In this document: positions 20,181 through 55,194 of the stretch, piece by piece
How positions within the stretch are numbered: the stretch's first letter is position 1
Layout of the letters: each line of letters begins with the position of its first letter
Assembly (NCBI GenBank): GCA_001643675.2
Contig: LSRY02000044.1
Coordinates: 186,001-250,000, forward strand
DNA length: 64,000 nt
Direction: 5' to 3'
Origin: Monocercomonoides exilis PA203
Taxonomy: Eukaryota; Protista; Preaxostyla
Notes under the pieces: model-generated
The model's input: the letters and a program-made list of their open reading frames with translations, nothing else
What the model was told of the DNA's origin: nothing
Database searches by the model: none
Position numbers and translations under genes: made by a program

Positions 20181-20265
20181 CTCTCAACAAACAAAAAATG
20201 AACCAGAAACCTCCTTTATCTTCCGTGCATTCATAAGTCAAGCCTGATGAAATTATTCTATTATA

Positions 20266-22468
20266 CCATTAGTGCCAAACCCGGAACCTGGTGCCAAACC
20301 CGGAACTGGCAAATTTTTGTGAAATTTGAAAAAATTTATAACTCATTGTTCATTAAGTCCACAGAGCTCGCTTTCGGGTCATTACTATATTTATTTTTAT
20401 TTGCTAATATTTTTCTAATAAATACACAAAAATGCACATATTTATTTAAAATGTTATATTTGTCATATTTTTGAAAATTACTATTTCTGAGATCGCTGCA
20501 GAAAAAGAAAATCATCGAATCGAGCTTATTTTAATATCTATGAGTAAAAGATCAAACATATGGGAATTTTGATTCGTTATTCGTTTGATGAAACATTTTT
20601 CATTGATTAGATCAATAACCATAAAGATGTGAAAGCAATTGGCATACTTGACTGCAGCTTAGAGAAGAAGTTTGCTTTGAATATTTCAAGAAGGTTTTAA
20701 AAATATTGTGTCTTTTATTTAATTTACAACAATTTTTTTAGTGAATGCACTTGTCAGAACCATGCTTTGATTGGGGTGTGTTTTTTTGGGGAGCAGGCTT
20801 TCAAAAAGTTTGATTACAGTTTGCTGTTTCTCAATTGTTGTATATTTTACAATTTTTTGTTTTGCGCAATTATTTGATTCTTCAAAAGCTAGTTTTTGAA
20901 TGTTTTGTTTGACGCACATATTTGCTTGATTTTATCATTGTAAAGAATGTTACTGCATTTATATCTTCAGATATCTGTGCTGTAAACATTAACTACTATT
21001 TAATGTCAATTTTTTGAAAAGCAGAAATATATCTTTATCGATATTTTTAATATTTATTATTTTTAATAATTCTGTTATTTTTTTGAAAGATATTCATTTT
21101 ACATGTTAATTTTGATGGAATCTGTTAAGCACTTATTTATTGAATTTACTACATTTTTTTCATAATATTTTTATTTGTATTTAATGAATAACACAACAGA
21201 ATTATCTTATATAAATTTTGAGTGTTTTTAATATTTATATAAATATTTATGTAAATTTACATTTTTTGAATTTTTTATTAACACATAAAACATTTTGCAT
21301 AGCAATAGCTGTATATGCAATTTAAAATATTCTGTAAGAAAAACATTTTCCAATTTGCTCAGTTAGTAAATAAGTATTATGCGCTATCGATGAACACGAT
21401 TTAAATAAAGATAAGTTTTCATTATTCACTTTCAGTCCGTAATTTAAAATCAAATTAAATCTCGCATAAATATTGTTAAATACGAATTGATTGAAATAAA
21501 TATCAAAAACACTCAAAATTTATATAAGATAATTCTGTTGTGTTATTCATTAAATACAAATAAAAATATTATGAAAAAAATGTAGTAAATTCAATAAATA
21601 AGTGCTTAACAGATTCCATCAAAATTAACATGTAAAATGAATATCTTTCAAAAAAATAACAGAATTATTAAAAATAATAAATATTAAAAATATCGATAAA
21701 GATATATTTCTGCTTTTCAAAAAATTGACATTAAATAGTAGTTAATGTTTACAGCACAGATATCTGAAGATATAAATGCAGTAACATTCTTTACAATGAT
21801 AAAATCAAGCAAATATGTGCGTCAAACAAAACATTCAAAAACTAGCTTTTGAAGAATCAAATAATTGCGCAAAACAAAAAATTGTAAAATATACAACAAT
21901 TGAGAAACAGCAAACTGTAATCAAACTTTTTGAAAGCCTGCTCCCCAAAAAAACACACCCCAATCAAAGCATGGTTCTGACAAGTGCATTCACTAAAAAA
22001 ATTGTTGTAAATTAAATAAAAGACACAATATTTTTAAAACCTTCTTGAAATATTCAAAGCAAACTTCTTCTCTAAGCTGCAGTCAAGTATGCCAATTGCT
22101 TTCACATCTTTATGGTTATTGATCTAATCAATGAAAAATGTTTCATCAAACGAATAACGAATCAAAATTCCCATATGTTTGATCTTTTACTCATAGATAT
22201 TAAAATAAGCTCGATTCGATGATTTTCTTTTTCTGCAGCGATCTCAGAAATAGTAATTTTCAAAAATATGACAAATATAACATTTTAAATAAATATGTGC
22301 ATTTTTGTGTATTTATTAGAAAAATATTAGCAAATAAAAATAAATATAGTAATGACCCGAAAGCGAGCTCTGTGGACTTAATGAACAATGAGTTATAAAT
22401 TTTTTCAAATTTCACAAAAATTTGCCAGTTCCGGGTTTGGCACCAGGTTCCGGGTTTGGCACTAATGG
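20266..22468. mobile_element. 2.2-kb foldback element: about 965-bp inverted arms, 275-bp spacer, TA flanks, doubled 16-bp subterminal motif
   Basis: TA|ccattagtgccaaacccggaacctggtgccaaacccggaac ... gttccgggtttggcactaatgg|TA. Arms 20263-21229 and 21505-22471; mirror ORF pairs in the track confirm the symmetry. Confidence 0.9.
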
Positions 22469-22569
22469 TATTGCGGTATAATTTCACATAGGTGACATTT
22501 CTGTATCATATCGTATTTTTGTCCAACAAATAGCTATTCACATATAAATAAAAATAGTTAGCTTAGATT

Positions 22570-23730: not shown

Positions 23731-23982
23731 TCTTCTTCATTCTTCTTCATTCTTATATTTTCTTCTTCTATCTTCTTCTTTCTTCTTCTTTCTTCTTCTT
23801 TCTTTTTCTTTATTCTTTTTTATTCTTCTTTTTTCTTCTTTCTTTTTCTTTCTTCTTCAATATTCTTCTTTCTTATATTTTCTTCTTCTTTCTTATATTT
23901 TCTTCTTCTTTCTTCTTCATTCTTCTTCTTTATTCTTCATTCTTCTTCATTCTTCTTCTTTATTCTTCTTTATTCTTCTTCT
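23731..23982. repeat. Pyrimidine-rich minisatellite with 10-bp period (TCTTCTTCWT) and 30-bp higher order
   Basis: Units such as tcttcttcat tcttcttctt tattcttctt recur in register. Confidence 0.85.
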
Positions 23983-24480
23983 TAAATACAGTTTGCTTCT
24001 GAAACCTGAAAATTATTAAGATAAAGCCCTCTTCCAGCGCCACTTGCTTTGCATTTCTGGAACTTGCAACCACTGATCCTGACACACGAAGTAATATAAT
24101 AAGCATACATTCCTCCTCCATAATCTTTTTGAGCGGTACAAGAATCAAATGTGTTATTTGCAATCTCAACAGACTTTATATTGATGCAATTTGTTCCGCC
24201 GCCTGCATAATGAGCATAGCAGTTGCTGAAATAGCAATGAGAAACAGACACAGAGGTGTTTGATTGACTGTACATGCACATAGCTCCATCACTTGGTACT
24301 CCGTCAATATTTGAGTTATTGTTTCCAGTTATCTTTATCCACTCCACTCGCACCAAGTGAATGTATTCTGTTCATGTTCTGTAATGTTTTGTCTCCAGAG
24401 ATTTAAATAATAATTTTCAGTTCCAGTAAATTACTGTTTCTATTCCGATAATATCCGATAAGCGAGGTGCTTGGAACAGC
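23982..24480 (-). pseudogene. Orphan, frameshifted copy of the receptor variable head domain
   Basis: HCYFSNCYAHYAGGG...NNTFDSCTAQKDYGGGMYAYYITSCVRISGCKFQKCKASGAGRGLYL aligns residue by residue with both full genes; an upstream frame gives RQNITEHEQNTFTWCEWSG. Confidence 0.9.
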
Positions 24481-25699: not shown

Positions 25700-28600
25700 G
25701 AAAAAATTGAATTGTTGTTAAAAATACAACGAAAATTGTTTGAGTTACACAAGAAGATGTCTGCAAATACATATCGGATTAACAATCGAAATAAGAATGG
25801 TTTAACAAAATCTCCATATATGAAAACATTCGAAAAAGGTGTTGGAAAATCAATCAAAACAATAAATATATGAGACACAACAGAAAATAAATACTCATGT
25901 CTGTTAACAATCAAAAAGGGAAACACAATCACAAAAACTTGAAAATAGAAAAATAGACAAACACAAACAGTTGTTTTGGTGAATGACAAAATCTAGTGAA
26001 AAAAAATAAAACAAACAAAATAAAAACAAATATTCATTTGAGGCTTTCCCACAAATCAAAACACATTCTCAAAATAAAAAAAAAACATCTATTTGAAATA
26101 AAAATCTGACTTTCTTCAATTCCACAAAGCAGCCACTGGTAATGCAGCTGCCCTGATATTTTCATTCCACCAACAAAACACTTATTCAAAGCAACACCAT
26201 CTCAAATTGCTCATCCATATTTCCTTCATTTCCTCTTTCTGCTCAATCGCATTCCCCTTCCAAACTATTTCAAACTGCAACTGCTGCTGGTGTTTCCCTC
26301 ATCTTCATCATCCTCATCAACTTCATTATTATTATTATTATCGTCACCCTCATCATCCTGTCCATTCGCTTCGCAATACATCAACGACTGAATCGCAACT
26401 GCATCCGAAACTGTCATGATCAGCGCCTCTTTCGGAAAGTGCCCAAGAAACTCCCGCTTCAAATCTCCCAGTGTCGGCCGCAGCCCTGCCTCACCCGACA
26501 GGCACTCCTTCACCACCTCTTCGAGACTCGAGTGCTCTTCCCCCATCCTCGGCCTCTCCCCACGAACAATCTTGTCTCCTGCAATCGCTGCCTCATACTC
26601 TCCAAACGGAATCTCCAGTGTCAAGCACTCCCACAGCATCATCCCAATCGAGAATGCTATTGAGCTCTTTGTTGCTCCCATCTTCTTGTTCATCTGCAGC
26701 TCTGGTGCCTTCCACCTTAAACACTCTTTTTTGTAATCATCTTCATCCTCAAACGCTGATGAGGGAAGAGAGTCACTATCATCATCATCACTAGCAGATG
26801 TCACAACTGTTGATGAAGAGATGGATGATGAATCTGAGTCATCTTCTGACAATAAGTCTGAATGCGTCACAATGCAGATCACCATATGTTCTGAGAACAG
26901 CACAACATGAGGACTCAAATTGGAAAGAGAGGAAAGCGGAACTTCCATTTCGTCAAAGGAGTGGAGCGCCAGATTAGCCACCCAGAACAGAATCTGAGCA
27001 GCTGTTTGCTCTCTTTGCTGAAGAGTGCCAATCGCCATCTCTTTCTTCTCATTCCTTCCATGCAGCAGCATGAACAGTGAATCTCTCAAGTCCACAATCA
27101 GCTTCTCATGAGGAGATGAACAGGCCATTGCATCCACCAGATTCGACATCGATGAGGTAGTTGGACTCACATCTTCAATTTGCACAAATGAGGTTTCTGT
27201 GTCTGTGGATGAAATCGATGGTGATGGTGTTCTCTTCCTTATCTCTTCCTCTTCTTCTTTCTCCAGTGCCCATTCAGGAATCTTGTCTGAATCCTTTCCA
27301 AGAATATATTCTGTCGATCCACTCTCAGCCAACAAATACTCTTCTGAATCCGAATGCACCATAGTTTTCACAAACACTCTCTTCTTTGCGTTCTCTTCAT
27401 TCTTCTTCTCTTCTCTACTCCACTGCTCCTCTGGTGACATCTCCATCGTCACCATCTCAAACGCCTTCGGATCCTTCTTGATGTTATCATTCACAATCTC
27501 TCTCAGATCTTTGTTCTCTTTCTTTGCTTTTCTCCATCGAACAGCCAGAACAATAGATACAATCAGAACAACCAATAATATCACAATCAACACAACAACA
27601 ATGATAATCCAATAAGATTTCCCCTCTTTTCCTCCTTCAACAATCCTTTCATCTCCACTTGTTTTGGATTCACTCCTGTTCTTTAGGACAAATGGATCAG
27701 TTGAGGAAGGAGCATTTGAATTCCCAAATAAAATATGCACACTCACCTCAACATCATTTCCACAGCTGCTGATTAGATCTTTTGCCACAGTACCCTCAAC
27801 TTCTCTCTCTGACAAAAACCCACTTGAATCAAAATCGTATTTTTCAATCTCTTTCTCTTCTCCTTTCCTCTTCACAACTGAGAATAACAGATTGCATGGA
27901 ACAAGAAGCATCCCTTTGAATGTCAACTTCATTCTATCTGTCTCTTCCTTTGCTTCTACACTCTCCAATACAGGTATGAAAAATGATGAATCCCTCTCAG
28001 AAGCAATCCCTTCAAAACTGCATCCTTCATTCAACATCCAAAGTGAGGAGTTATCCTTCAATCCATCTCCTCCTTTCAAACTCTTCACATTCAATGTTCC
28101 TGAATCTGAACAAATGATGTTCCTTCTCAGTGATGGATATCCTTCAATCGATGGATTATTGTTTTCAAATCTTCCATAATTAACAGTCAACGCCCCTCCA
28201 CTCATTGTTATTCCTCCTTCTGGTGAATTCGAGATTGTTGTATCTTTCATCATCACATAACTCTTCACAACATCCACAAGAGATCCATCCCATCTGCACA
28301 TCTCTTCTTCTATATTCAAATATTGTTCATTTCTTTTCTTTAGGTTTCCATCAAAAATGCAACTGTCCATTTTCACATCAGTGCAATTCTCCATTTTCAT
28401 CAATTTCCCTTTTGTGACCTTTGAACTGACTCCAAATATTGTGCAATTTGTCAATTGCATAGTCTTTTTCATTGAAAGGCAAGATATCAATGATTTATCA
28501 TTTCCTTCAACTGAGATATTTTCTGTATTGATATTCTTTATTGTAAATTGTCCACATTCTTTAAAATCCATCAAAGATGTTCTAATTGTTGAATTGCAAA

Positions 28601-31600
28601 TCGTTGATGAATCAATCACTGATGGAAGAGAAGATGAAAGATATATTGAAGATTTTTGAAGCACAAGATTTGACGCTGTGCATCCAACAATTTGTAATTC
28701 TCCTTTTTCTATATTAATAATGTGAAATGGAATGTTTGCAAAAGCAGCATTTCCTTCTTCAATTAAATGTTTTGAGCTGAATGAACAATTCATAATTTCT
28801 AGAATTCCTCCTTCGGGTGACATCAATGATTCATGTGAAGAGATGAAATACGAATCAAATACAAAATTCACTCTCACCAACGAGACTGTTTCTCTTGTTG
28901 AAATCAAAGAATCCCTTGTTTTTTCAATTCTTGATTTCACTTCAACTTTACAATTTTCTCTGCTCTTCGAACTCAGACTCATTTCCTTCAGATTTATTTC
29001 TCTTCCAACCACACTCTCAGTATCAACATACAATAGACTCACATATTCAGATGTCAAGTGAATCAGACCTCGTTCAATTGAATCACATGGAAGAGCATTT
29101 GTTCCACATTGTCTGTCATTCGATCCAACCGCACTGCTCACAATTATTGTGTCACTCTGATGGATAGTCACAAAATCAATCAGATTTGTATCTTCTTTGT
29201 GTTCGCAACAATCAATTCCATATATCGCATTCATCCGCGAATAATGGCCCTCTCGAAGATCAAACTGAAATTGGCTTTCATTGATCTGAGATGTGATGCT
29301 GAAACATTCAATGAAAATATCATTCCCCACTCTTGCTGTATTTGCACTGAATTTCATTCCCACAAATGTGAAATTCAATTCTCCTCTTTCCTTTGTTGTC
29401 AAATACACTCCTCCTCCTCTTCCTGTGGAGTCACTGCAGCTGCATTGACTGATTATCGAGTCAATCATCTTCATTGATCCAGATGCACCCAATGTGAAGA
29501 ATATTGCCCCTCCTTTTTCACTTGTTTCTGCCTTGTCTTCTGTGATGTTGCTCTCATTCACAACAAAACAAATCTTTTTCTCACTCTTCGATTCCAAAAT
29601 GCTTGCTCCATTGTCACTTCTCTTCACCCCTGAAAATGATGAATTATCAATGTTGAGACTCATTTCCTCACCCACTTCATTTATCTTCAATCCTGTTTCA
29701 GACTTCTTGATTGACAAAATGCAACCTCCACTTTCATTCAACGATTCCACTTGAACATTCACAAAATGGCAAGTAATTCCAGTATCATGAATGACAAAAA
29801 TATTGTTTCCAACATTGCACGATTCAATCGACAAATCATTCACTTCCATACTTCCTCCAATCGCATTTACAAATGGACAATCAAATCCATTGTTCACTCC
29901 TGCTTCTGAATGGAATGAGCATCCAGTTATCACCAATTCTCCATTTATATTCGAAATAATTGTTTTGGCTGAGTTGTCAAATCCAGATGTTAATTGAAGT
30001 TGGATGTTTGTCAATTCAAGATAAATATCATTTTCCATAAAATATTCCAGTTGGCCTCCAATTGCCTTTTCAAAATTCAATGTTGCTTTCACATTCTCTT
30101 CTCCCATCTTCACACCCTTTTTGATCTGATAATTGGACACATTGAATGAATCTCGAATGATTGTTGATCCTTCAATCTGAATTGTTTTATTTCCTTCTCC
30201 CTCTATCATGTTTTCCATCCCTTTCCACATCGTCTGACATGGCTCTTCTTCACTTCCACAACGTGCAACATCAAATCCTTCAGATGAGACAAATATCTCA
30301 AATGAGCTGAATGGAATGAGGAACATGAACAAATCCTTTTCTTGATGAAAATCATCACTCCCAACAAACAGAGTCTTATCATCTTTCATTGAGGAATAAT
30401 CAAATTTGAATGAGTCGTTTGTCACGGTCTTGTTCAGATCAGATGTGGAAATGAACATGTTCTTCCCCTTCCATGCACTGCACCCACTAAATGTCATGTT
30501 CTCCAATGAAAATGTTCCTATTTGATTGGCAAGTTCAGCAAACATCCCTCCTCCCATTCCTCTCCCTCCGTTCTCAACATCCTCTGATGGCACAGCACAT
30601 CCTGATAATTTCACTCCTTTCACTCTCAATGTTCCTCCATTTCCCACTGATATCATCATCCCTCCTCCTTTCATTCCACTTCCACCTGAGCATCTTGATG
30701 AAAAATTGCTTTCTTCAATTTTCACATTCCCATTAACCCCCATCCCAACATTCAAACATCCCCCTCCTCCACTTCCACCTGCCACATTCACCTCCACTCC
30801 ACTCACTCTGCTATTCAATATCTCCAATTGCGCTCCACTTGTCATTGTGATTGGTGATTTCCCATTCATCTTCAGTGTCATTCCACTTTCCATCACAAAT
30901 CCATCAACAATCAGATTCCCTCCTGCCATATCAATGATGCTGTATCCTATCTTTCCATCAGTCAATGCCCCACTCTCAAATGAGACTGAACAGTTCGTCA
31001 CACTGAGTGTTGATGTTGAATGAATGAATGCACTTCTCCTTGCTTTCAACTGACCTTTCACAACAAATGCAAGTCTGCTCATTGTCAGTGAACTCGAACA
31101 CCCAACAAGCCAATCTTGTGTGTCTGATCCTCCATCACTCACATTCACTCGAATCCTCTCTCCATCTGATGACACTATTCTGCCTGAAATATTCACACCA
31201 AATGATGGTCCTGTTATTTCCTTCGTTATTGACGAAGATGAGATAACTTCTATTTCTTTTGAACCTTCACTCAACCTCGAGTTCGCACAATAATCAACTG
31301 TCAAACACCTAAATGCATCAAATCCACAATGATTGTGATCCTTCCCATTTCCTCCACTCCCATCAACAAGCACTTTTGCCCCCATTGTGCACAAATACAC
31401 AAACAGTGGAATCACTCCACTTTCATCCCCATTTTCACTCCCACTCAGTTTCAACACATCTGATGGAATTGTTCTCACATCAAAAAATGAAAATGTGTTT
31501 GTATTCACTTTTGAATCCAAAAACACTCCACTCCCACAATCAACAAACACATCCTTCCCATATGTTGCCACATTCCCATTCACTTTCGAAAACTCAACAT

Positions 31601-34600
31601 TCTGCCCAATTGTCAATCCACATCCCTCACTCTCCATCAATACAAACATCCCTCCTCCTCTCCCTCCATTATTCTTTGCATTATTCTCTGCCTTATTCCC
31701 ATCAATCACACTCGTTCCACTCGCAGCCACTTTTCCACTTCCCTTCAATCCAACATACATTCCTCCTCCTTTTCCACCACCACAACTGCACCCATTCACA
31801 TTGCATCCATCAACAGTCAACGTTCCACACCCTCCAACTGTTCCTTTCATCCATCCTCCATCTCCACCATTCCTTTTGACTCCACTGATATTGCATCCTG
31901 AACAAATCACATTCGTCATCCCTTCACAAAACTCAATCGCTGAGTGATCATTGAATGTCAGCCCTTCCTCCATCACAAATCGTTCCACGTTCAGACTCCC
32001 GCTCTGCGCATTCACAATGCTATATCCAAAGGTCACACTCGATGTGCTCTCTGATATATGAGCAACTGAGCAGTCTGTGAGTGTGAGTGATGAGCTTGTC
32101 AAACAAATGAGTGATGTTGCACTCGATAACGAAAATGGAATTTGGAATGCAATGTTCTTTATTGAGCTTGCACTCTGAACATTTATCAAATACGAAGATG
32201 TCATTCCACTCGGCACTCTCACATTCACATTCGTCTTGTTAATCCCACAATACACCTCCCATTCATATGACCCCTCCATCGACACAACTTCTTCCAGCTC
32301 AAACCCTGAATCCAACACAATGTTCTTTTTTGACAAACTGAATCTGTTCTCTGCTGCCTTTGCGATTGTTTTGCATGGAAAATACCCAAACCCACAAAAC
32401 CACGAGTCATATCCTCCATATCCATTTACCCCCTTCCCCACATGTGCTGCTCCTGAAAATGCATCCAAAAACACATTCAATGGGAATATTCCCATCCCTC
32501 CCTCATTCCGATCATATCCCATCAGCTCATCATTAACAGATCCATTGTGTCCAACATTCAGCTTTGAGGCTGTTATTGCCCCACTCACAAACCTGCTCCC
32601 ATTCACAAGCACATCTTTCCCTCCCAATGTTGCGCTGCAACCAACAAAACTCACTGATGATATTGTAAAATCGAATGAGCTATCTGCCAGCCACAGCATC
32701 ACCCCTCCTCCATATCCACTGCACTTGCACTGATTAAATGTTGTTGTCCCTCCGCCAGGTGACGTTGAATCTCCAATAAGAATCTTGCTCGATATTCCCT
32801 CCAGCACAACCTTTATCCCTCCTCCATCTCCATTCACACACTCACATCCTTCCATTGTTGTGTTCCACACCACAAATGTCTCTCCTCCCTTCACACTCTT
32901 TGTCATCACCACTCCATCTCCTTCTGTTGTCCGATTCACATTTCGAATTGTCACATTCCCCAGAACACTCTCTCCTGATGCCGATCCTGTTGATAATGGT
33001 TCAGAAAACAGAGGCTGTAATATTTTCATATTTTTGATCTCCACATCAATCATCTTCAACTGCCTCAGCGCCACTTCAAGCACAGATGAAGAGATTCCAC
33101 TCCCACCTGATGTCGAAGAGTTGATCACCACATCCTCCAGCGAAAGAGTCCCGCTCCCCACAGACACCACAAACACACTCGGCGATGGGCTTCTTGTCGC
33201 GTTGTGATCGATCCCCACATGCCCCACCTTCAGTTGACCAGAAGATATGCTGAACAGCGTTGTTGAAGAGATTGAAAGAGAATTTGTCCCAATCACACTC
33301 ACTGCCTTCCCTTTCCCAACAACTGAAATCTTCTTTTCCCCGACATTGATTGTTGCTGCTTCGCTCGCATGTCTTCCGACAAGCACTGAAATTCCAAAAC
33401 TAGCTATATCATTGCATTTATTCACGCAATATCCAATCGTTTTACAAGGCTTTGTTTCATTTATCCCACATAATTCATTTGAGTCATTTCCATTCTCTCC
33501 AACATAAATCGTTTTGTTCTTAAGCCAATCCTTCTTTTCTGTATGTTGAGACACCAAATTGTTTCCGTTATAATAATCATAGTACACTCTCCTATTATCG
33601 CTATTCGTTGTATATGATTCATAGAAAGGGTTGTTAGACGAAAAGAGATTGTAATAATCTGAAAAACACACATCATGACCATATGGAGTTAAAGAGTTGC
33701 AACTGCAATCATGGAAGAAGAAGAAATAGCAATAAATGTTGTTGCTTGGGGCTGTTGGTTGATATGGATCAAAATACAATCCTCCGCCAGTTGATGCTGC
33801 GTTGCACGAAATGAACTGCATGCTACGCATTTTGAATGCAGCTGGAACACCGTAGCAATACATCCCTCCACCAGCAGCATTTGTAAGTGAGCACGAAGTG
33901 AAACTGCAGTCAAACACACCCGCACTCTCTCCTCCTCCATTTTCTTCTCTAATGCATCCTGTTTCTGAAACATTAAAATAATCGAGATAAAGTCCTCCTC
34001 CACAATCTTTTGCTGTGCATTTATGGAATTCGCACCCACTGATCCTGACACATGACGAAATTGATTCAGCATGCATCCCTCCTCCAGCCAAATTTTGTGC
34101 AGTACAAGCATTGAATGAGTTGTTCTCAATCTTGACAGAATTGATAGAATAACAAAATATTCCTCCACCATAAGCATATGCATAGCAATCATTAAATGAA
34201 CAAAATTTCACTGAAAGCGTCCCAGCTGCAAGATTATACATGTTAATCGCCCCTCCATTCGAAGCCCTATCTGTATAAGAATTAGTTGTTCCAGTTGTAT
34301 TTGACCCATTCCACACGCACCAAGTGAACGAATTCGCCCCATTGTCTGCTATCTGCTGTCTCGCTGGTTTCGATGGATTCCCCTCACTCCCGCTGATTGC
34401 AACATTCTGAGAGCGATAGCACCTGACAAAAGAGGTGTTCGAAGCAGCCAAGGATGATGAGGGGCTGTTCAGCGAGGGGACAATGCCCCCGTCATACACA
34501 TCCCACACCGATGAAAATGTGCACCCACTCATCAGAAACACTCTTTGGCCCAGTCCTTCAGCCAGTTGCCTTGTTTTCAATGGATTTGTGGAGATGTTGA

Positions 34601-36625
34601 AGAATTCTAATTGGGAAAGGGATACAAAGTGCGATGAGATGAACGGAGCTGAAGACACACAAAAAGATGAGAAATGAGAAGAACAAACAGAAATGTGGCA
34701 TTTCTCTGAAATATCTCCTTCCACTGCTTTTGAAGAGAAAAGTGGAGGGAATATCTGTTCAGTCGAGGATGAGGTTGAAGTTGAAGACGATCTGAGGGAA
34801 ATGTTGGTGAACAATCCACAGCTCCCACACAAATCAAAGGGGGGTGTCTCTCTCTCAACTCCAATCACACATCCATGCACCTCAACAGAACTTCCATCCG
34901 ATGCCCTGAGCACACTCTCCCCACTGATTTCCCTCAATCTCAATGAATTCAGTTTCAGTGATGAATTGACCCCAACAACACTTCCCTCAACCCCACTCCC
35001 ACCACACACACCCTCCTTTCCCCACATTTTCCACTCATCGCAAAAACCCCATTTTTCATCTTTCCCAACCTCTCCACTTTTCCCATTCCATTGTTTTGTG
35101 CATTTCTTCAATATTTTCTTTTGCTTTTCGGTCTCTCCCACACCACCTTCATTTCCTTCAATAAATGTGTCAAATAAATGGCCATCTCCAATTTTGTTGT
35201 TTTGAGCCTTCTCTCGCAATGTGCCTTCAGGATAATCCAATTCTCCTTCTTTCGCTGATTCCTCAACAAATCCTGCTCCATCACTTGTGGCACTCTTGCA
35301 CACGCACCCCACACTAATTATCCACACACAATAAAATATTCCTGACAGCAACATAACCATGCCTCTCCAACTGCTTTCTTTTCTTTTTTCTATTGCAGAC
35401 TAATATGGGCACTTCAACAAAAAAAAATATTATTAAACTTTTGATAAATATTGTATTATAATTAAAATAAATATTCTCCTTTGTTTATTTTTCAACATTT
35501 ATTTATGATCCGATGAATAATAGAGAATGAATCATCCATTTTTGTTGATGTTCCGATATTTCAGCCGTCACTCTCCGTCCAGCGAATATCTGCCTCTGGG
35601 ATGGAACAACGCATGATTTGGAGCATATAATTTTGCTGGCTGTATTTTCATGAGGAATGGCATCAGGGAAAGAAATGAATGATGTGAAGATTGGTTTCAC
35701 AGGTGAATGGAAGGGGTGCGAATGATGGAAGTTTTGCGATTCTGCATCACATATAAATGTATGTCTTTTGGTGGATTTTTTGTGATATTTTTATTTGAAG
35801 AGATTTTTGATGTTTTGAAAGAAATGATTGTTTTTGCCTCGATTGGCTGAAATGGACACTTTTCACAAAAGGGATGGGATGCATGGAACAAGGTTATATG
35901 AGCATTTGGGTTGGATTTTTGATGAGTTTTTCTCACAGATAGAGATGGAATTTCAGTTCAAGAGAAAAAGGCCAAAATGTGAAATGAGTGAAAATGGACA
36001 TTTTTTGTTGAGGCAAAGGGGTTGCAGGAAGGGATTCTATTTGCTATTGGTATGCGACAAACTTTGTTTTATTCGAATATTTTCATGAAAAATGAAATTT
36101 TTTATTTTTATTTATTCGTATTTTTGGGCAGTGGAAGTTATTTGAGAAATTCCTGATGATTTCTATTTGCAGGGAGAAATTCTTTTGGAGAAAGGAAGAA
36201 GGGTAAATAAGGAAGAATAATCAGATTAAAGGATATTTAAGATAAAAGTTCTATTAAAGAGGAAAAGAACAAACTACAATGATGATTAAGAAAGAAAAGA
36301 ATGGAAAAAGATGATTCCATTGAAACAATTCTTTCGAACGTTTTTGGATCATCGTACATCAGCATCGTTTTGGAAGAGGAGATGAACTTCTATTCATATG
36401 CATATTCTCAGAAGCGACAAAGATATGACTGAAAGGAAAAGTATTTCTTCTTCTTCTTTAAACACATCTCAAACATCATCATCTTCCTCCTTGCACAACC
36501 TTCTTCATCATCATATGCTGTATCAGAAATGATGCAAAGGGAATGCTAATCTGGCTAATCGATGAGAATTCAAGCCAATCCTTTTGTGATTGAGCTGCTG
36601 AGAAGAGGAAAGAGGAAATAGAAAA
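25700..36625 (-). repeat. Left unit of an inverted duplication (gene plus flanks); partner 55195 to the window end
   Basis: Homology covers about 1.25 kb upstream and over 0.5 kb downstream of both CDS; mirror ORFs 35828/55772 and 25684/63786. Boundaries approximate. Confidence 0.9.
26265..35360 (-). CDS. Giant single-pass receptor-like protein (3031 aa): signal peptide, Pmp-like beta-helix ectodomain, five Cys-knuckle modules, TM helix, TKL-like pseudokinase
   Basis: Uninterrupted ORF; hydrophobic N-terminus; repeated FxxC...GGG(A/I/M) motifs; TM YWIIIVVVLIVILLVVLIVSIVLAV followed by RWRK; kinase C-lobe RWKAPEL...FSIGMMLWECLTLEIPF...GERP...CL...RPT. Confidence 0.92.
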   Translation of the reverse strand: MVMLLSGIFYCVWIISVGCVCKSATSDGAGFVEESAKEGELDYPEGTLREKAQNNKIGDGHLFDTFIEGNEGGVGETEKQKKILKKCTKQWNGKSGEVGKDEKWGFCDEWKMWGKEGVCGGSGVEGSVVGVNSSLKLNSLRLREISGESVLRASDGSSVEVHGCVIGVERETPPFDLCGSCGLFTNISLRSSSTSTSSSTEQIFPPLFSSKAVEGDISEKCHISVCSSHFSSFCVSSAPFISSHFVSLSQLEFFNISTNPLKTRQLAEGLGQRVFLMSGCTFSSVWDVYDGGIVPSLNSPSSSLAASNTSFVRCYRSQNVAISGSEGNPSKPARQQIADNGANSFTWCVWNGSNTTGTTNSYTDRASNGGAINMYNLAAGTLSVKFCSFNDCYAYAYGGGIFCYSINSVKIENNSFNACTAQNLAGGGMHAESISSCVRISGCEFHKCTAKDCGGGLYLDYFNVSETGCIREENGGGESAGVFDCSFTSCSLTNAAGGGMYCYGVPAAFKMRSMQFISCNAASTGGGLYFDPYQPTAPSNNIYCYFFFFHDCSCNSLTPYGHDVCFSDYYNLFSSNNPFYESYTTNSDNRRVYYDYYNGNNLVSQHTEKKDWLKNKTIYVGENGNDSNELCGINETKPCKTIGYCVNKCNDIASFGISVLVGRHASEAATINVGEKKISVVGKGKAVSVIGTNSLSISSTTLFSISSGQLKVGHVGIDHNATRSPSPSVFVVSVGSGTLSLEDVVINSSTSGGSGISSSVLEVALRQLKMIDVEIKNMKILQPLFSEPLSTGSASGESVLGNVTIRNVNRTTEGDGVVMTKSVKGGETFVVWNTTMEGCECVNGDGGGIKVVLEGISSKILIGDSTSPGGGTTTFNQCKCSGYGGGVMLWLADSSFDFTISSVSFVGCSATLGGKDVLVNGSRFVSGAITASKLNVGHNGSVNDELMGYDRNEGGMGIFPLNVFLDAFSGAAHVGKGVNGYGGYDSWFCGFGYFPCKTIAKAAENRFSLSKKNIVLDSGFELEEVVSMEGSYEWEVYCGINKTNVNVRVPSGMTSSYLINVQSASSIKNIAFQIPFSLSSATSLICLTSSSLTLTDCSVAHISESTSSVTFGYSIVNAQSGSLNVERFVMEEGLTFNDHSAIEFCEGMTNVICSGCNISGVKRNGGDGGWMKGTVGGCGTLTVDGCNVNGCSCGGGKGGGMYVGLKGSGKVAASGTSVIDGNKAENNAKNNGGRGGGMFVLMESEGCGLTIGQNVEFSKVNGNVATYGKDVFVDCGSGVFLDSKVNTNTFSFFDVRTIPSDVLKLSGSENGDESGVIPLFVYLCTMGAKVLVDGSGGNGKDHNHCGFDAFRCLTVDYCANSRLSEGSKEIEVISSSSITKEITGPSFGVNISGRIVSSDGERIRVNVSDGGSDTQDWLVGCSSSLTMSRLAFVVKGQLKARRSAFIHSTSTLSVTNCSVSFESGALTDGKIGYSIIDMAGGNLIVDGFVMESGMTLKMNGKSPITMTSGAQLEILNSRVSGVEVNVAGGSGGGGCLNVGMGVNGNVKIEESNFSSRCSGGSGMKGGGMMISVGNGGTLRVKGVKLSGCAVPSEDVENGGRGMGGGMFAELANQIGTFSLENMTFSGCSAWKGKNMFISTSDLNKTVTNDSFKFDYSSMKDDKTLFVGSDDFHQEKDLFMFLIPFSSFEIFVSSEGFDVARCGSEEEPCQTMWKGMENMIEGEGNKTIQIEGSTIIRDSFNVSNYQIKKGVKMGEENVKATLNFEKAIGGQLEYFMENDIYLELTNIQLQLTSGFDNSAKTIISNINGELVITGCSFHSEAGVNNGFDCPFVNAIGGSMEVNDLSIESCNVGNNIFVIHDTGITCHFVNVQVESLNESGGCILSIKKSETGLKINEVGEEMSLNIDNSSFSGVKRSDNGASILESKSEKKICFVVNESNITEDKAETSEKGGAIFFTLGASGSMKMIDSIISQCSCSDSTGRGGGVYLTTKERGELNFTFVGMKFSANTARVGNDIFIECFSITSQINESQFQFDLREGHYSRMNAIYGIDCCEHKEDTNLIDFVTIHQSDTIIVSSAVGSNDRQCGTNALPCDSIERGLIHLTSEYVSLLYVDTESVVGREINLKEMSLSSKSRENCKVEVKSRIEKTRDSLISTRETVSLVRVNFVFDSYFISSHESLMSPEGGILEIMNCSFSSKHLIEEGNAAFANIPFHIINIEKGELQIVGCTASNLVLQKSSIYLSSSLPSVIDSSTICNSTIRTSLMDFKECGQFTIKNINTENISVEGNDKSLISCLSMKKTMQLTNCTIFGVSSKVTKGKLMKMENCTDVKMDSCIFDGNLKKRNEQYLNIEEEMCRWDGSLVDVVKSYVMMKDTTISNSPEGGITMSGGALTVNYGRFENNNPSIEGYPSLRRNIICSDSGTLNVKSLKGGDGLKDNSSLWMLNEGCSFEGIASERDSSFFIPVLESVEAKEETDRMKLTFKGMLLVPCNLLFSVVKRKGEEKEIEKYDFDSSGFLSEREVEGTVAKDLISSCGNDVEVSVHILFGNSNAPSSTDPFVLKNRSESKTSGDERIVEGGKEGKSYWIIIVVVLIVILLVVLIVSIVLAVRWRKAKKENKDLREIVNDNIKKDPKAFEMVTMEMSPEEQWSREEKKNEENAKKRVFVKTMVHSDSEEYLLAESGSTEYILGKDSDKIPEWALEKEEEEEIRKRTPSPSISSTDTETSFVQIEDVSPTTSSMSNLVDAMACSSPHEKLIVDLRDSLFMLLHGRNEKKEMAIGTLQQREQTAAQILFWVANLALHSFDEMEVPLSSLSNLSPHVVLFSEHMVICIVTHSDLLSEDDSDSSSISSSTVVTSASDDDDSDSLPSSAFEDEDDYKKECLRWKAPELQMNKKMGATKSSIAFSIGMMLWECLTLEIPFGEYEAAIAGDKIVRGERPRMGEEHSSLEEVVKECLSGEAGLRPTLGDLKREFLGHFPKEALIMTVSDAVAIQSLMYCEANGQDDEGDDNNNNNEVDEDDEDEGNTSSSCSLK

Positions 36626-37774
36626 AATTATCAACTTCGTCTTATCTGTTTCTTGAGTCATCTTCGTAATCCTCTTGTGCATTCTCATGAATAGAAGAAA
36701 GAGAAAACGAATTGAAGGAATAGGCAGATTTTCCTTTGAATTTTCTGATTGGTGAGAGAAAGAAGCTGAACAAAAAGACAAGAATTTCATTCTTCTCTCT
36801 ATCGACATGACTTTTGAGCTCTTCTTCCTTTCATTTTTCAACTTCAGATTTCACTTTGTGTTTGATAATCTTTCTTTTGTCTCAATCCGATTCAACTCCG
36901 ATTTGAATGAGCCAACAATAAATGTTTGTTGGGGATGCACAATGTTGTTGCTGAGCTGAGTCAGTTTTCACTTCAATGTCTTGACAAATTGATAGGCACA
37001 CCAAGCAATTTTTAAAGAAGCTAATGAAAGCTTCTTTCACTCTCTCTCTTCTTTTTCAAGCTTTCAAAACAATTGCACATCATATTATCTTTTTTCTTTT
37101 GTTATTGTTGTTTTTGTAATTCAAAAAATAAAAATGAAAAAAGGCGATTTAAAAACATAAACTTGAAACTTGAAGAAAGCGAGAGCCAACCAAAAATGAT
37201 GGATTGTTCTCGACAAAGACTGAAAAACAAAAATTAAATAAAATTAAATAAAAATAAAATATGGAAAAAGAAACAAAAAATTGATAAATATCAGCTTCAG
37301 TGTCAAACAGGCAAGCTCATTAAAATACAACTGACGGCGAAGTAACACAACACACTTGCTGCAACAGAAAGGATTGCTTTCCATCCAATCATAACAGAAG
37401 ATGCTGTCCCAACGATGCTCCTCTGAAAATCAGCTGTCCAGATACCCTTCAAAGTGCCTAAAACTATCTCACTTCAAAAGAATCGCAGCACGAAGCTAAA
37501 TGTAGCAAAGAGAAAACAAAAAATAATTAAGAAACCGGAGGATGAACACTAGCAATCAACCATTTGCGAATAAATATCGAAGAGGCATGCAAAGCAAAAC
37601 AACTCAAAATCAGACAACAGAAAAAGACTTCAAATTACATTCAAAAATAAACAAAATAAATAAATAATAATAATAATAATATAAAAATAAAAATAAAATA
37701 CGAACAAATAATAAGAAATCGCTTTCTGGTCATAAAGAAGAACCATTTATTGCAACTGGCGCTTCCTGTGCTCC

Positions 37775-40700
37775 TCAGCCCCCGCCTGCCATCAGCCCCA
37801 GCACTCTGTCCCTCGAGTCCAGCAGCATGTTCAGAGCAGACTCCTTCTTTGCCAGCAGCGCTGCTGGCCTCCCTCGCTCAATTATCTCCCCGTCTTCCAC
37901 AACCGCAATCTCGTCGCACTCTGCAATCGTGTCCAGATGGTGTGCAATCACAACCACTGTGCACCCCCGCCTCCGAAGCACCCGCCCCATTGCCTCCACC
38001 ACCCGCCCCTCTTCCTCTCCCCCCATCCGCGATGTCCCCTCGTCCACAACCACAACACGCTCTTCCCCCAACACCGCTCGGCACAGCCACACAAGCTGCT
38101 TCTCTCCTCCACTCAGCTTGCACACCCTTCCTCTACCTCCTCCTTCTCCTCCTTCTCCCTCAGAAATTGCTGATTCCATGCTTGCTCTGTATCCATCGGC
38201 TGCTTCATTTGAAGAAGAAGAAGAAGAAGAAAGGAAGGAGGAAGGTGCCTTGACTGAAGCACTTTCTTCTGCTCCAATTCTTGATTCTGCCAGCGCACCA
38301 TTCACAATCGTGTCCAGCCCCCACCCCATCCTCTCTGCCACAATCTCCTTCAGCCCCACTTCCTCCAGCGCTCTCCAAATCTCCTCGTCGCTCTTCTGAC
38401 CAAAAACATCCACATTCTCTCGCAGCGTCCCTCCCATCAGCGGAGCATCCTGAGGAATAACACACACCTTCCTCCTCAACTCTTCCAGCGCCTCTTCGGC
38501 AATGTTCATCCCATCCAAAAACACACTTCCACGATTCCATTCATCATCATTGTCATCGTCTTCTTCATCATCTTCTTCTTCTTCTGCAACATTGTCACTT
38601 TCCAGAATAGATTTCCTTTTCAAATTGCTTCTTGCTTTCGTTCTGTTTTTCTTTTTTCCTCCTTCTTTCTCTTCCTTTCCCTTCGCGCTTTCTCTCCTCC
38701 CCACCTGTACTGCAAATCCTGTCTCGCCGTCAATCTCATATCTTCCCCTCCGCCTCTTGTCGATCTCCACCAGCCGAACAAGCACTGCCACCAGCGACGA
38801 TTTCCCCGACCCGCTCCGCCCGCAGATCCCCAGCCACTTCCCCTGCTCCACCCCGAACGACACACCCCGCAGCACATACTCCTGCCCTACCCGATACTTC
38901 ATCCACACATCTCTGAATTCCATCCCCAACACTTTGCCTCCCTCTTCCCCTTCCCCTTTCACTTTCCCTTCTTTTCTTCTCTGAGCCAAATCCCTTGCAT
39001 CTGGTGCTTTCACAGAGTCTGCTCTTGATCCACTCTCAGATGAGCCAGAAGCCGAAGAGCAAGCCTGTTCGTTGTTTTCCATTTCCATTCCTGCATTCTT
39101 CTCACATCCCGCGTCCTCTCTGCTGTCTGCACAGTCTGCGCCGGCAAGCGCCACTTGCCGAGGCATCTCGCCTCCTTCGCTGCCCAGCCGCCCCTGCTCC
39201 TCCTGCGGCATCTCCTCTGCGTAGAACAGGATCCGCTGCAGCGCCGTCATCCGCGCATCCAGATCCACCGTCCGCTCCACCAGCGTCTGCCCCAGATGCG
39301 CAAACTCCATCGACGCTGTGATCGCCACCGCAAGCAGCCCCGCACTCATTTCCCACCACCCAATCACCACCACCCCTCCCATAAACACTGCCCCCAGCAG
39401 CGACGTCGTTACCCGCGTCCATCCTCTCCCTTCTCCACTCAGCAGCAGCCGCATCGACCATTCGTCTGTCGCCTTCTCAAAACGCCTCAGCCACTCCTCC
39501 CTCCTTTCCCACTGCCCAATGCTCACAACCCCACTGCTTATTCCCCTGCTCCTCCTTCTCTCCCTTCTCTCCCTTCTCTCCCCTTCGTTTCCTCCCTCCT
39601 CTTCTTCCCCGTCGCTGCAGACCTCGCTCAGCGTCAGCACTGCCGAGCGCCCAATCGACTCCACCCGCTGCAGGTTGCGTGCTGCCCGCCCGTACAGAAC
39701 AAGCACCCCAAAAAACACCCCCAGAGTCGGCACTCCAATCCACAGAAACCACACGCTCGGCACTGCCACCACCACCACCTGCCCCACCACCCCGATCCAG
39801 CACCCCGCCACAGCCACCCCCACACTCACGAGCATCTCGTCAACCATGCTCATGTCCCCGCTCGCCCTGTTCAACACCCGCCCCGCTGGCGTCCTCTCGA
39901 AGAAGCTCATCCGCCCGCCCACAATCGACTTCATCAGCCTCCAGTGCACCTCCACCGAAGACCGTCTCTCCCCCATCCCCGCCATCAATGCCCGCACCAC
40001 ACTCAGCACTAGCTGCACCACAATCGCCCCTCCATACACCCACCCTTTCTGCCCCATCCCCAGCTGCCCCAGCCCCCCTGCTTGATCTTCCTCCCCAATC
40101 ACCCCCAGCCAGCTCTCCCCAAACACTCCCATCCCCTCCGACACCACAATCACTGCCCCAAACACACACAGCCACCCGATCGGAAACAGTGTCCTCAAGT
40201 ACTTCCAATACAAACCCGCTGGAACCCTTCCTGTCGCCTGCTCTTCTGCCGTAATCAGCTTGCTCTTCTCTTTTCTCCTTATCCTTTTCGCTCCCCAACC
40301 AGTCTCACCTCTTCCAATCATCCTCTCTTCTCCATCAAATTCGCCTTCTTTCCCTTCCCCTTCCTCGCATCCCCTATCACTCGCATCGCATCGCACAACT
40401 TCCACCGAATTCACTTCATCCTCATTGGGCTCTATCGAACTGCCTCCACACCCTGCCACCATCGGTGCAACGGCCCGCTCTCCAATTCCCCTTCGCGTTG
40501 GCTGCAGAAGAGGCTCATTTGAGAGCGGTGAAGCAGACAAAAATGAAACTGACTGTGCTGAGTCCATTGGCGAATTCTCTTGCGCGTTTGTCCACACTCC
40601 ACATCCTTCGCAGCTCGGCTGTGTGCATCCGTCGCACTCTGATGGCTTGTTCATCCCATCTTCTGCCATTCCTATCACAACGCGAACTGGCCTCACTTCT

Positions 40701-43700
40701 TTCACTGCTCCGTCTTCTTGCTCTTTAGCTTCCTTCTCCTTCGCCACAGTCAGCATGGCTCTCCTCTTCGCTTCTGCCTCTGCTCTTGCTTCGGCTGCAG
40801 CTGTTTCACACAGCTCACAGCAATCGCACTGTCGTTCTGTGCCGCACAGCTCGCATCCACTTGCTTTGCCCCATTCCGCCCTTTCGCTCTCTTCCAACGA
40901 AGTCATTGCAAAAAGTGGATTCCACTCTTCTGCCTCTCCCTTCCTCTCATTCCAATGCCTATATTCATCTGCATCATCTTCATCATCGTTAATATTCAGT
41001 TTCAAACACTTTCTTTCTTTTTCAAGTTTCACAATTCCTTTCTTCTCTCCCTTATCCGTCTCTTGAATGTTGAGTGAGAATTCTTCTTCTCCTTCATTTT
41101 CTTTGCGGGAACTCTTGTGAAACGAGGATTTAATGTCTGTGCTCCGCAAATGGAAGGTGTGTTCTGATGTGTTGGCACTGCAAATGGCTGGAGAACATGG
41201 CGCCTCGCACAAACAGCCTCCTCCCTCCTTCCGCACAGCCTCTGCCTCTGCCTCTGCCTCCTTCATCCCACACAAAACATCTTCCATGCTTCTCCTCTCC
41301 CGCAAGGCACGCCGCCGCAGCTCAATTTCTGCTTTCGTTCGCCTCCGCCTCCTCGTTCTGCCATCTTCGCCTTCTGCTCTCCTCCCCTTTGCCTCTTTGC
41401 CCCTGCGCCCCATCTCTTCTGCACCCACCGTCTCTTTGACCCACTTCTCCACATCTGCAAACCCTGCCAGCTGCCCACCCGCAAGCACCCCAACATAATC
41501 TGCCACCTCTGCCCACTTCCACTCGCTCGTCGTCATCACCACACACACCCCGCACTCATCCACAAGCACCCCAACAATCCCCTTCGCCATCACCTTCCAT
41601 CCAATGTCCTCGTCCAGCCCACACAGCACATCATCCAGCACAACCACTTTGTGCTCTCTTTCTCTTCCCCTCCCTTCCCCTTCTCTTCTCTCTCTTTTTC
41701 GCTTCACTTCGCACAAGCACTTGTACACAATCCGGCAAAGCTGAATTCGCGCCTTCTGCCCTCCGCTCAGGTTGTCTCCTCCTTCTCCCACCTCCTCAAT
41801 CATCGCATGTCTCTTCTGCCTTCTCTCCTTCTTCGTCTTCTTCCTCCTCCTCCTCCTTTTCATTTCAGTGCATTCACTCTCTTCTTCCTCTTCCTCTTCC
41901 TCTTCCTCTGATTCTTCCAGCTCGACTTCTGCATCCAAGCAGCACGCCTCCACAGCCTTTCGAAGCAGATCCTTGTCCTCCTCTTCTCCAAACACGATGT
42001 TCTCTTTCACCGTCGCACACTCAATAAATGCATTCTGACCGCACAGCAGCACATCTCCATCCGCACGCAGAGAACTAACAGGCACACCTTCAGCATCTAC
42101 CCCTCTCTCAACATCCTCTCCACACTCCAAGCAAACACCTCTATTTTCTGTATCACTTCTTTGTCCATTCAATGCCAATGGCAAATGCAGTTCTGTATCC
42201 TCTGCACCAACACCAACCACTCTCCTTTCTCCTTCCTTCTCTCTCTGCTCCTCCATCCTCTCCCTTGTACACAGCCTCTCTGCCTTCAGCTCCATCGCCT
42301 TCAGCTCCATCGCCACTGCACGCTTCACCCGCTCTTTCGTCATCACTTCCCGCATCTGCCCGCTCAGCGCGTTGCACAGCGCTGTTTTCCCTGATCCCAC
42401 TCCTCCCACCACAACTGCCACGCTCTCCCGGCGCATGCGCAGGTTCATTCCGCTCAGCTGAAACACAGACTGCCTCGAGCGCACCGATGGAAATGGCAAA
42501 TCTGTTGACGCTTGACACGAGCACTCGTCCTCAAACAGTGGCGTCTTCATCGCTGTTGCCCCGGTTGACCTGATCGCAACTGGAGCAAGTTCGCTTTTCG
42601 CAGACGCAGAATCATCACTTGCTGCTGAAAGCAAAGGTGGAGAAAGTGAAGAAGCTGGCACGAAAGCAGTCGCCTGAGAATGTTTGCCCGCAAGCTGCTC
42701 TGTTTCGGGGGACAGTGCAGCATTGTCGGCTCCTGTGGCACTCGCTCCATCCTCACAAGTCGCAGAATCCATTACTTCGTCTTTAGCCGCAACTGCTGCT
42801 GTTCGCATTTCTGATGTTGTTGCTGTGCTTGCAGACAGTTCTGCCCCTTCCCAAAGCATCTCCTTCCTCAGCCCCAGCGATGCCAAATCCACATCCTCAG
42901 CATCTGCCTCATTCCACACAAAGCATCCGTTCCTCATTTCCAATGCAATTTCTTCTCTCTCTCTCATCTCTTCATCCTCCATTTCACCACCAGCATCATC
43001 AGCATCATCATCTATCCTCGCCTCTCCACCACCTTCATTTTCCTTTTTTGTTTCTTTCTCTTTCTCTTTCTCAATCAACGCCTTCACCACCATCCTCCAG
43101 TGCTCCTTCATCCGCTGCTCCTCCCCTTGCTCTGCCCACTCCTCCGCCAGCCATCTCTCAACACGCCGCTCCCCAGCCCACACAAGCCCTGCTGCCTGCG
43201 CCCATTCCCCCATCTCTGTCGCTGGCTCCGTCATCTGCGCCTGATATCCCAGTATCGGCATCACACGCACTGCAAACCACCGCCCGTCCACCCCGCCCTG
43301 CCCAAGAAGCACCCCAATCGTCGCCCCATTCACCAGCCCCGGCACAGCACTCATCACCGCCTGCGCTGCCTGCTGCCACCCCGTCGCCCGCCCTATCTCC
43401 ACTGCCTGCGCTGCCCGCACCCTCCCCACTGCCTCGCTCATCCGCCGCTCCAGCCCTCCCATCTTGATCGTCCGCATCCCCTTCACCACCTCTCCTATCC
43501 CCTTCACCCTCCCGTCGTTCATCCTCAAATACGACCTCATCCCGCGCTCCATCGCAACACTCATGCCCCCAAACACACACACGCACACCCCCATCACCGC
43601 CACCCCAACCCACGTAACCCACCCGAATCCTCGCACAACAAACACCAGCGGCACCACCAACTGAGCTGGCATCCACACAATCGACGGCAGCAGCGGAAAC

Positions 43701-44671
43701 AGCTCGCTCATGTTCCGCAGGTCAACTGACAATATCGAGGCCACACTCCCTCTGTATCCCCCTGTCCCTGCCCCTGCCCCTTCCATTTCGTTTCCTCCTC
43801 TTTCTCTCCCTCTTTCTGTTCTTTTTTCATTCAAGCCTGTGTGGCGCTTCGCCTTCAGCGCACGCTCCATCAGCGCATACGACAGAGCCCCGCGCATCGA
43901 AATTGCATAGTGCTGCAGATTCCTCTGCGCCCATGCATCAAACAGCCCGTGCACAAAAGGCAGCACAATCAGAAGCACCCCACTGGCAACTGGAAATGCT
44001 CTGCTCCCATCCTCCTCCTTTTCTGCAACTGCCTCCAGAACAAGCCCCATCATGGTGGGCTGCAGAATGTGACTCGCCGTACTAATGCAATGCGAATTCA
44101 ACAATAATTCAAAATTTTTTTCAGAATTTCATTTTAAAAATCAGACAAAAAAAATTATAAAATAAACATGAAACAATGAATCAAAAAATAAATATTTTCG
44201 CTAAATAGCATACTGCAGCCCCAATAGCACTATCGCAAGAACAAGTCTGGATGAAGGCATGTCCAGAAGCATCAGCTTCATCAGAGAAGGCGCTGAGGGC
44301 TTTTTCGTCTTTTTCTTGCCGCTCGCCCCACGCTCCCTCCTGTACCTCTCCAACTCCATCTCATACTCTCCCCACCGTTTGTCCCATTTGGCAACCAATT
44401 GCTTCGCCTTCTCTCTGCACTTGTCCTCCTCGCTCAGCCACGGAATGTCTTTTTCTGTCACTGGCTTGACTCGGCAAACAAACGGGTAGAAAAAGCAAAA
44501 CAGCACGTTCAAAAACCATGCCGACTGTGACTCCCGGTTTTTCGGGCGCTTGTACTCTTCCTCCCCTCTCTCTCCATGCACAAATCCCAAATCCTCTTTT
44601 TTCCTCGTCCTTTTCTCACCGTCGCGCATTTCATCAATATCCTCCGAAACACTCCGAATGTCTTCTCTCAT
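37775..44671 (-). CDS. ABCC/MRP-type full ABC transporter, two exons (44671-44214 and 44081-37775)
   Basis: NBD1 GGVGSGKT, LSGGQKARI, VVVLDD; linker EEQATGRV...YWKY; FFERTPAGRVLNR; NBD2 GRSGSGKSS, IPQD, LSGGEKQL, VVVVDEGTS, IAH. A GTATGC...TTAG intron at 44082-44213 preserves the frame. Confidence 0.93.
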
Positions 44672-54515: not shown

Positions 54516-55194
54516 TTCTCTTCTGCTTTCTTTCCCCTTCCACTCACTTGCCTCTTCTTTTGCCTTTGCCTTTGCCTTTGTCTTTGACACTCATCAGAGA
54601 AGAAAAAGAGAAATGCTTTGAAAATGCCTCCAAAACCGACTGAAACACACAGAATATCTGAATTGTTTGAGGAAAAACCCCACAAACGATGAAGAAGAGG
54701 AAGAAGAGGAGGAAGAGGAAGAAGAAAACCTCAAACACTTTTCGAGTGTTCTCTGTCATCCCATCAGAATTGTGGCTGTCTTTCTTCTCCTCTTCATCCG
54801 ACTCCTTCTCATTTGCTGCACTTCCTCCTTTTATTCATCACACTTTCTGTTAAATCTGATGAATTCTCTGTGTTTTCTGATGTTTTGCAGAAGAACGAGG
54901 GAAGAGAAACACTTTCTGATTGCATTGGCTTTGCCAGCATCTGAGAAGAAGAAGAGAAAGAAGGAGAAGGAGAAGGAGACGAAGAAGATGATGAAACGAT
55001 ATTAACATAAATGAGGATGATGAAGATGAAGATGAAGATGATTGTGGAGTGTGTGATTGAAGATTTATTGGGACACACACCAAAACAAGAACAGCAGCGC
55101 AGATGAAAGAAGAAAGCAACTGAAAATGGCTGTGGCCTCAAGGAATTGATGTGCAACTGCCAATGAGAAGCACCACGATGAAAAATGTTGTTTC

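Follow-up and report, generated by a model that had tools for sequence, protein, structure and literature searches.

Predicted beta-helix surface proteins of Monocercomonoides exilis combine a hypervariable, tyrosine-rich face with a pseudokinase tail

In lamprey VLRs and in plant LRR receptor kinases and NLRs, an LRR solenoid with a conserved framework displays hypervariable, aromatic-rich outward residues on one beta-sheet face; VLRs are assembled somatically, and plant RLKs usually carry complete kinase domains. The Monocercomonoides exilis proteins described here share this one-face solenoid hypervariability with the VLR and LRR systems, but carry it on a beta-helix rather than on an LRR fold. 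The EhTMKs of Entamoeba histolytica have ectodomains that are CXXC-rich rather than beta-helical. Like the M. exilis proteins, EhTMKs form an expanded ectodomain-TM-kinase family of a protist; many EhTMKs are truncated and a single one dominates expression, and EhTMKB1-9 is an active kinase, unlike the pseudokinase tail of the M. exilis proteins (PMC2880585).

In chlamydial Pmps (PF02415), as in the M. exilis heads, GG[AG]-hydrophobic and Fxx[NC] motifs form the rungs of a right-handed beta-helix. GGA closes turn T3 and opens sheet PB1 of each Pmp coil (PMC11166332), and the variable elements of these proteins lie on a common face beside the GGA turn (PMC10715098, PMC11166332). The chlamydial motif is GGA(I/L/V) with FxxN, whereas the M. 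exilis heads show GG[GA](I/M/L) ... FxxC at regular spacing. Variation in M. exilis consists of substitutions in coils of fixed length, including the PB1 strand, in contrast to the variable-length omega-loops of the chlamydial proteins; the autotransporter barrel and Pmp middle domain are missing, with a TM helix and a pseudokinase instead; and there are more than 100 paralogues, compared with 9-21 chlamydial Pmps. Among metamonads, the Trichomonas Pmp and BspA proteins are expanded families of single-TM surface proteins with Pmp-type repeats, for which adhesion and endocytosis have been proposed. According to the accessible part of their description, trichomonad Pmps differ from the M. exilis family in having short tails with endocytic motifs and no kinase, with about two dozen expressed, and no face-restricted hypervariability is mentioned in that part (PMC6701047).

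The accessible parts of two publications on the M. exilis genome report 332 predicted tyrosine kinases (320 of them TKL), the largest family, overlapping unclassified repeats; they describe neither an ectodomain nor a variable face nor lost catalytic motifs (PMC6759080, PMC8767320). This published kinase expansion probably comprises the same genes as the family reported here, and our literature search, thin on subscription journals, found no description of the ectodomain. The M. exilis system works like a diversified receptor family of the LRR type, and is a member of none of the families compared above.

Receptor genes in the window and their paralogues

The window, a stretch of 64,000 nucleotides of the M. 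exilis genome, contains gene A (P0001; 26265-35360, minus strand), which is intronless and encodes a 3031-residue single-pass beta-helix receptor with a pseudokinase tail. A hydrophobic N-terminal segment, judged by eye to be a likely signal peptide (35289-35360), is followed by the head (residues 340-614; 33519-34343), with about eight beta-helix coils bearing GG[GA]-hydrophobic ... FxxC motifs, then by a stalk of modules marked by a C...PC motif (27612-33518), a transmembrane helix at approximately residues 2584-2608 (27537-27611) and a cytoplasmic tail holding a TK/TKL-like C-lobe after a two-strand hairpin (26436-27140), all on the minus strand. The C...PC motif recurs at residues 631, 989, 1345, 1701 and 2085, a spacing of 356-384 residues.

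Gene B (56453-63457, plus strand) encodes a 2334-residue paralogue and is an inverted duplicate of gene A, the duplication extending over about 1.3 kb of upstream and 0.6 kb of downstream DNA. Its head (residues 340-614; 57470-58294), transmembrane helix (62078-62152) and pseudokinase C-lobe (62573-63277, matching Pfam PF07714 over profile positions 161-257 only) all lie on the plus strand. The two heads are 77% identical, with their differences concentrated on the variable face described below. Residues 615-800 are only 55-61% identical between the two genes and have different nearest neighbours in each, indicating module swapping. About two 356-residue stalk modules of gene A (window approximately 30540-32680, minus strand) are missing from gene B, and across the paralogues the number of stalk modules varies. 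Alternative genetic codes proved unnecessary, because the long reading frames of both genes are open in the standard code.

The original prediction had described three copies of the head, and every residue string that it quoted is present where it was placed; the third copy (copy C, approximately 23976-24400, minus strand), on the other hand, is a pseudogene head fragment. It belongs to another subfamily (64% identity to P0124 versus 53% to gene A), and a frameshift near 24340, broken GGG and framework motifs, and a stop at the start of a 10-bp-period microsatellite rule it out as an intact receptor. The microsatellite, at 23731-23980, cuts the copy off.

Several other features were observed in the window. 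Between genes A and B lies an intronless gene for an ABC transporter of about 2100 residues with low-complexity insertions (37775-44104, minus strand; GC 53-57%). A near-perfect palindrome with 470-nt arms, 18 nt apart, occupies 836-1793, and a 997-nt inverted repeat, 99% complementary and with a 245-nt spacer, lies in AT-rich DNA at 20248-21244 and 21490-22486. Inverted repeats of 181 nt (97%) at 16768-16948 and 20000-20180 flank an ORF (17557-19182, minus strand) for part of a receptor from a distant subfamily, consisting of stalk only and 28% identical to gene A; the arrangement is possibly a terminal-inverted-repeat element carrying receptor cargo.

Searching with the head (residues 330-625) retrieved at least 108 M. 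exilis paralogues, a lower bound given the length-limited homologue search, the best matches being 40-74% identical over the head and a few of them only partial. The large family foreseen in the original prediction thus exists, and 96 of the 108 paralogues carry a TM segment. Beyond M. exilis, the same search returned weak repeat-level matches only, in Streblomastix and Blattamonas. The head architecture recurs, at about 30-36% identity, in unassigned metagenome proteins (P0165, P0168, P0171, P0176, P0225 and P0239), which are probably from other oxymonads; the heads inspected among them have Tyr around their GGG turns. Within M. exilis, P0004, P0260 and P0261 (MONOS_8047, 16438 and 8050, on the L003 contig) are 93-96% identical overall and about 83% in the head. 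Loci L006, L007 and L008 hold clusters of short head-only ORFs (about 400-600 residues), several of them open, with no full-length gene adjoining. Immediately downstream of family members, at L003 25676-27742 and L011 22784-24319, there are a tyrosine recombinase (PF00589) and a DDE_1 transposase.

A kinase-fold tail and a beta-helix head

The tail of gene A shows no GxGxxG, VAIK, HRD or DFG motif and keeps RWxAPE. The same pattern holds among 95 tails, in which HRD and VAIK never occur (0/95 each), a DFG-like motif occurs in two and RWxAPE in 82. In our model of the tail, no more than two strands and a disordered linker come before the kinase C-lobe, leaving no intact N-lobe, and the model matches structures of TK/TKL kinases with a best E of 7e-7. 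Since both the catalytic motifs and an intact N-lobe are missing, we assign the tail as a pseudokinase, and the linkage to a pseudokinase proposed earlier for the head is found across the family as a TM segment joined to a kinase-fold tail without catalytic motifs. The tail is conserved (dN/dS 0.10 between genes A and B), and PF07714 is present in most of the family. By eye, the tails of two beta-helix proteins from Blattamonas are similarly motif-less. The layout of signal peptide, ectodomain, single TM and cytoplasmic kinase-fold domain fits that of a receptor kinase, and we infer that the pseudokinase acts as a scaffold.

An AlphaFold model of the head, based on 101 sequences, has block pLDDT values of mostly 93-98 and values mostly above 90 over the head, and superposes on right-handed pectate-lyase-like beta-helices with Z of 17-19 and an rmsd of 3.2-5.7 Å over about 225-255 aligned residues. 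VIA-align resolved the fold where Pfam and Foldseek did not: a Foldseek search of the PDB with the head model gave no match at E<0.001, and Pfam applied to the 101 heads gave one Beta_helix match only, with no PF02415. The nearest Atlas cluster is a Preaxostyla family, and the next are clusters bearing Chlam_PMP, at TM 0.54-0.66. Model, superposition and Atlas neighbours together support the Pmp-type beta-helix scaffold of the original prediction. The binding groove of beta-helix enzymes has PB1 as its central sheet, with T3 and T1 on either side (PMC8952511). We read the T3-PB1-T1 face of the head, by analogy, as a putative ligand groove, because the same face is the groove in homologous folds; faces were assigned by coil register and DSSP, not by atomic coordinates or surface area.

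The structural matches of the head include the glycoside hydrolase BT_1002, CBA120 tailspikes, RbmB and AlgG, and this company of glycoside hydrolases, tailspikes and lyases would suit a family of polysaccharide-degrading enzymes, lyases or hydrolases with varied substrate subsites. However, PB1-outward and T3 positions hold no invariant residue of catalytic type, the invariant residues being a framework of Gly, Cys, Trp and Phe, and the conserved Asp563 sits in a G-x-D-hydrophobic motif that recurs in the stalk modules. Because the groove is without an invariant residue, we reject an enzymatic role as extremely unlikely.

One variable, tyrosine-rich face of the head

The head had originally been contrasted with the roughly 200 nearly identical residues just upstream of it. 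That stretch is indeed 95% identical between genes A and B (residues 141-339), but it provides no clean control for constraint, as dS is also low there (0.12, versus 0.46 in the head). Among 11 subfamily members, differences at third positions amount to 0.07-0.11 for residues 1-200 and rise to 0.29-0.35 within the head, and the 5' end and upstream DNA are homogenised among these close paralogues; about 1.3 kb of upstream non-coding DNA (35361-36627, minus strand; gene B copy at 55192-56452) is common to the subfamily at 80-87%. Family-wide, residues 141-276 are not conserved (mean 1.76 bits). The low upstream dS rules out equating identity with constraint, and the near-identity therefore reflects homogenisation of DNA, not only protein constraint. 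Because the upstream contrast mostly records how the DNA has evolved, the appropriate comparison is one made inside the head and over the whole family. Residues 1-140 of gene A (34941-35360) have an open frame with dN close to dS (dN/dS 1.3 between genes A and B), first and second positions together differ as much as third positions among the 11 paralogues, and this segment is possibly an unconstrained pro-region.

Per-site entropy over 102 paralogues placed the hypervariable sites at positions -3 to -1, +4, +6 and +7, counted from the first G of every GGG, on one outward face of the head as originally predicted. Mean entropy is 2.82 bits at PB1 outward sites, 2.55 at the end of T3 and 2.11 at the start of T1, compared with 1.16 at PB2 outward sites, 1.48 at PB3 outward sites, 0.75 in the core and 0.15 in GGG (face versus other outward sites, p=5e-9), and 19 of the 25 columns of highest entropy fall within the predefined face. 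Any two paralogues are on average identical at 28% of face sites, 61% of other outward sites and 75% of core sites, and each of the 102 has a distinct face signature. Among MONOS_8047, 16438 and 8050, 20-22 of the 45-50 head differences are on the 42 face sites.

The 27 face sites that vary most are composed of 19% Tyr, 12% Ser, 11% Asn and 6% Asp, with 3% Ile and about 2% each of Lys and Leu, against a neutral expectation of 4-8% Tyr, 8-12% Lys, 7-13% Leu and 8-14% Ile and a Tyr content of 1.6% in the stalk, which upholds the Tyr/Ser/Asn/Asp-rich character first noticed at these sites. Such a Tyr/Ser/Asn/Asp alphabet is typical of antibody CDRs; the term 'CDR-like' refers to a resemblance in composition and geometry and to nothing more.

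These data bear on the possibility that constraint is merely relaxed, the groove being the least constrained face of a structural or adhesive coat protein that drifts near-neutrally under gene conversion and holds no repertoire of specificities. The departure of the face from neutral composition speaks against such drift, as do the coils themselves, which are nearly free of indels and preserve both loop lengths and the Gly/Cys/Phe framework. A further argument comes from the stalk: at the same register positions of its coils (smaller sets of 37-86 sequences), entropy is 0.4-1.4 bits and Tyr content 0-8%, whereas the head reaches 2.66 bits and 18% Tyr. Because stalk equivalents are far less variable, the variability is specific to the head rather than a generic surface effect.

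Selection, conversion and readings of the family

The selection analysis covered the DNA of 19 heads, taken from the window and from loci L001-L012, and excluded copy C and frameshifted or partial heads. With fixed site classes, dN/dS is 0.89 on the face, 0.17 at other outward sites and 0.08 in the core. With branch lengths scaled rather than fully re-optimised, M2a improved on M1a by a 2ΔlnL of 41 (F3x4) or 29 (F61), with 6-7% of sites at 2.5-2.8, and M8 on M8a by 31 (F3x4) or 22 (F61); the standard models put 6-14% of sites at dN/dS>1. All 15 sites identified by M8 belong to the groove side, to which 86 of the 257 codons are assigned (p=3e-8). Recombination as the sole source of the M2a signal was not reproduced in 27 coarse null simulations on four discordant segment trees, whose maximum was 9.8 versus 27.7 observed. 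With segment-specific trees, 2ΔlnL falls to 8.1 (p=0.017).

Allowing double and triple substitutions gave a much better fit, in which the dN/dS>1 class is gone (2ΔlnL 0) and dN/dS is about 0.55 at PB1 and T3 sites versus 0.11 at other outward sites. On simulated point-mutation selection the same model had full power (2ΔlnL 31-67), indicating that multi-base codon changes are truly in excess in the real data; this excess is higher on the groove (0.23 vs 0.11), and short-patch conversion or site-specific amino-acid preferences could lie behind it. Conversion tracts are significant in two of 171 pairs, are about 60 nt long and span variable sites, and the PHI test gives p=0.011 for all sites and 0.35 for third positions. 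The scarcity of such pairs and the 94-98 distinct six-residue alleles found per coil in five central coils rule out widespread recent reuse of whole coil patches. The positive selection suspected at the variable sites is therefore significant in M2a and M8 and survives a coarse recombination null, but vanishes under the multi-nucleotide model. The robust statement is that amino-acid replacement is about five-fold faster on the groove under every model.

Part of this evidence suits relaxed constraint: the face-average dN/dS of 0.55-0.89 is never clearly above 1, the multi-hit model abolishes the signal of positive selection, the two significant tracts cover variable sites, and debris of gene birth and death, such as copy C and the head-only ORFs, is common. 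Weighed against the composition, the preserved framework and the quieter stalk, we regard this account as quite unlikely.

A second alternative is antigenic variation, in which the head would be a variant surface antigen, with one or a few expressed at a time, escaping host secretory antibodies or viruses or predators that bind the groove. The variable domain is the membrane-distal one, the homogenised upstream DNA and N-terminus could serve as recombination anchors, and the head-only ORFs of L006-L008 would also fit. In pooled assembled contigs from three metatranscriptome runs of one study, short contigs identical to gene A have a depth of about 5-7 and variant stalk contigs of about 240-1560, those at about 600-1560 matching the MONOS_8047 cluster; this is only a hint that expression of the family is uneven, since contig depth cannot rank expression. 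Of four stalk variants, three have MONOS_8047 as best match in translation (98.5-100%; in one case level with another paralogue); the fourth shows a tie with gene A. Escape from antibodies, however, should vary all exposed faces, whereas purifying selection acts strongly on the outward sites of PB2 and PB3 (dN/dS 0.11-0.19). The enrichment in Tyr also suits a binding surface better than an escape surface, and we consider antigenic variation unlikely, though the least so of the alternatives.

Recognition of self, kin or mates, with heads binding other M. exilis surface proteins in a homophilic or paired manner, would share the geometry and composition described above, and 9cdu, a solved beta-helix-peptide complex according to the accessible part of its record, is among the structural neighbours (Z 17.3). 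No partner family has been identified, however, and more than 100 germline paralogues would suit environmental ligands better than a single polymorphic recognition locus. Such recognition is very unlikely.

On balance, we think it probable that these genes form a germline-encoded repertoire of ligand-binding surface receptors, although the depth of RNA contigs from one cluster would also fit a switched surface coat. Each paralogue would bind a different ligand at its groove, and the ligands would most likely be polysaccharides or proteins on the surfaces of bacteria, whether prey or neighbours in the gut, given that M. exilis shares its surroundings with bacteria and may depend on their phagocytosis (PMC12308965). 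New specificities would arise by duplication, by fast replacement of groove codons, often several bases at once, and by short-patch conversion between paralogues, and binding would be relayed inside by the conserved pseudokinase as a scaffold and not as an enzyme. We are doubtful of a bolder version, an anticipatory, antibody-like library of binders on a beta-helix scaffold, in which sister genes and head-only cassettes would donate multi-base patches by conversion, each cell would display one or a few receptors and signalling would proceed through a kinase C-lobe alone.

For the repertoire of ligand-binding receptors, the consequences would be both practical and biological. The head would provide a binder scaffold of natural origin, a beta-helix in whose fixed framework about 27 positions open to randomisation have been mapped. 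A gene family annotated as 'tyrosine kinases', and probably the largest in the first eukaryote known to be amitochondriate, is recast as pseudokinase receptors with a diversified groove. The family would be the beta-helix counterpart of LRR-based repertoires, and the discrimination of prey or partners by a gut protist would become directly testable.
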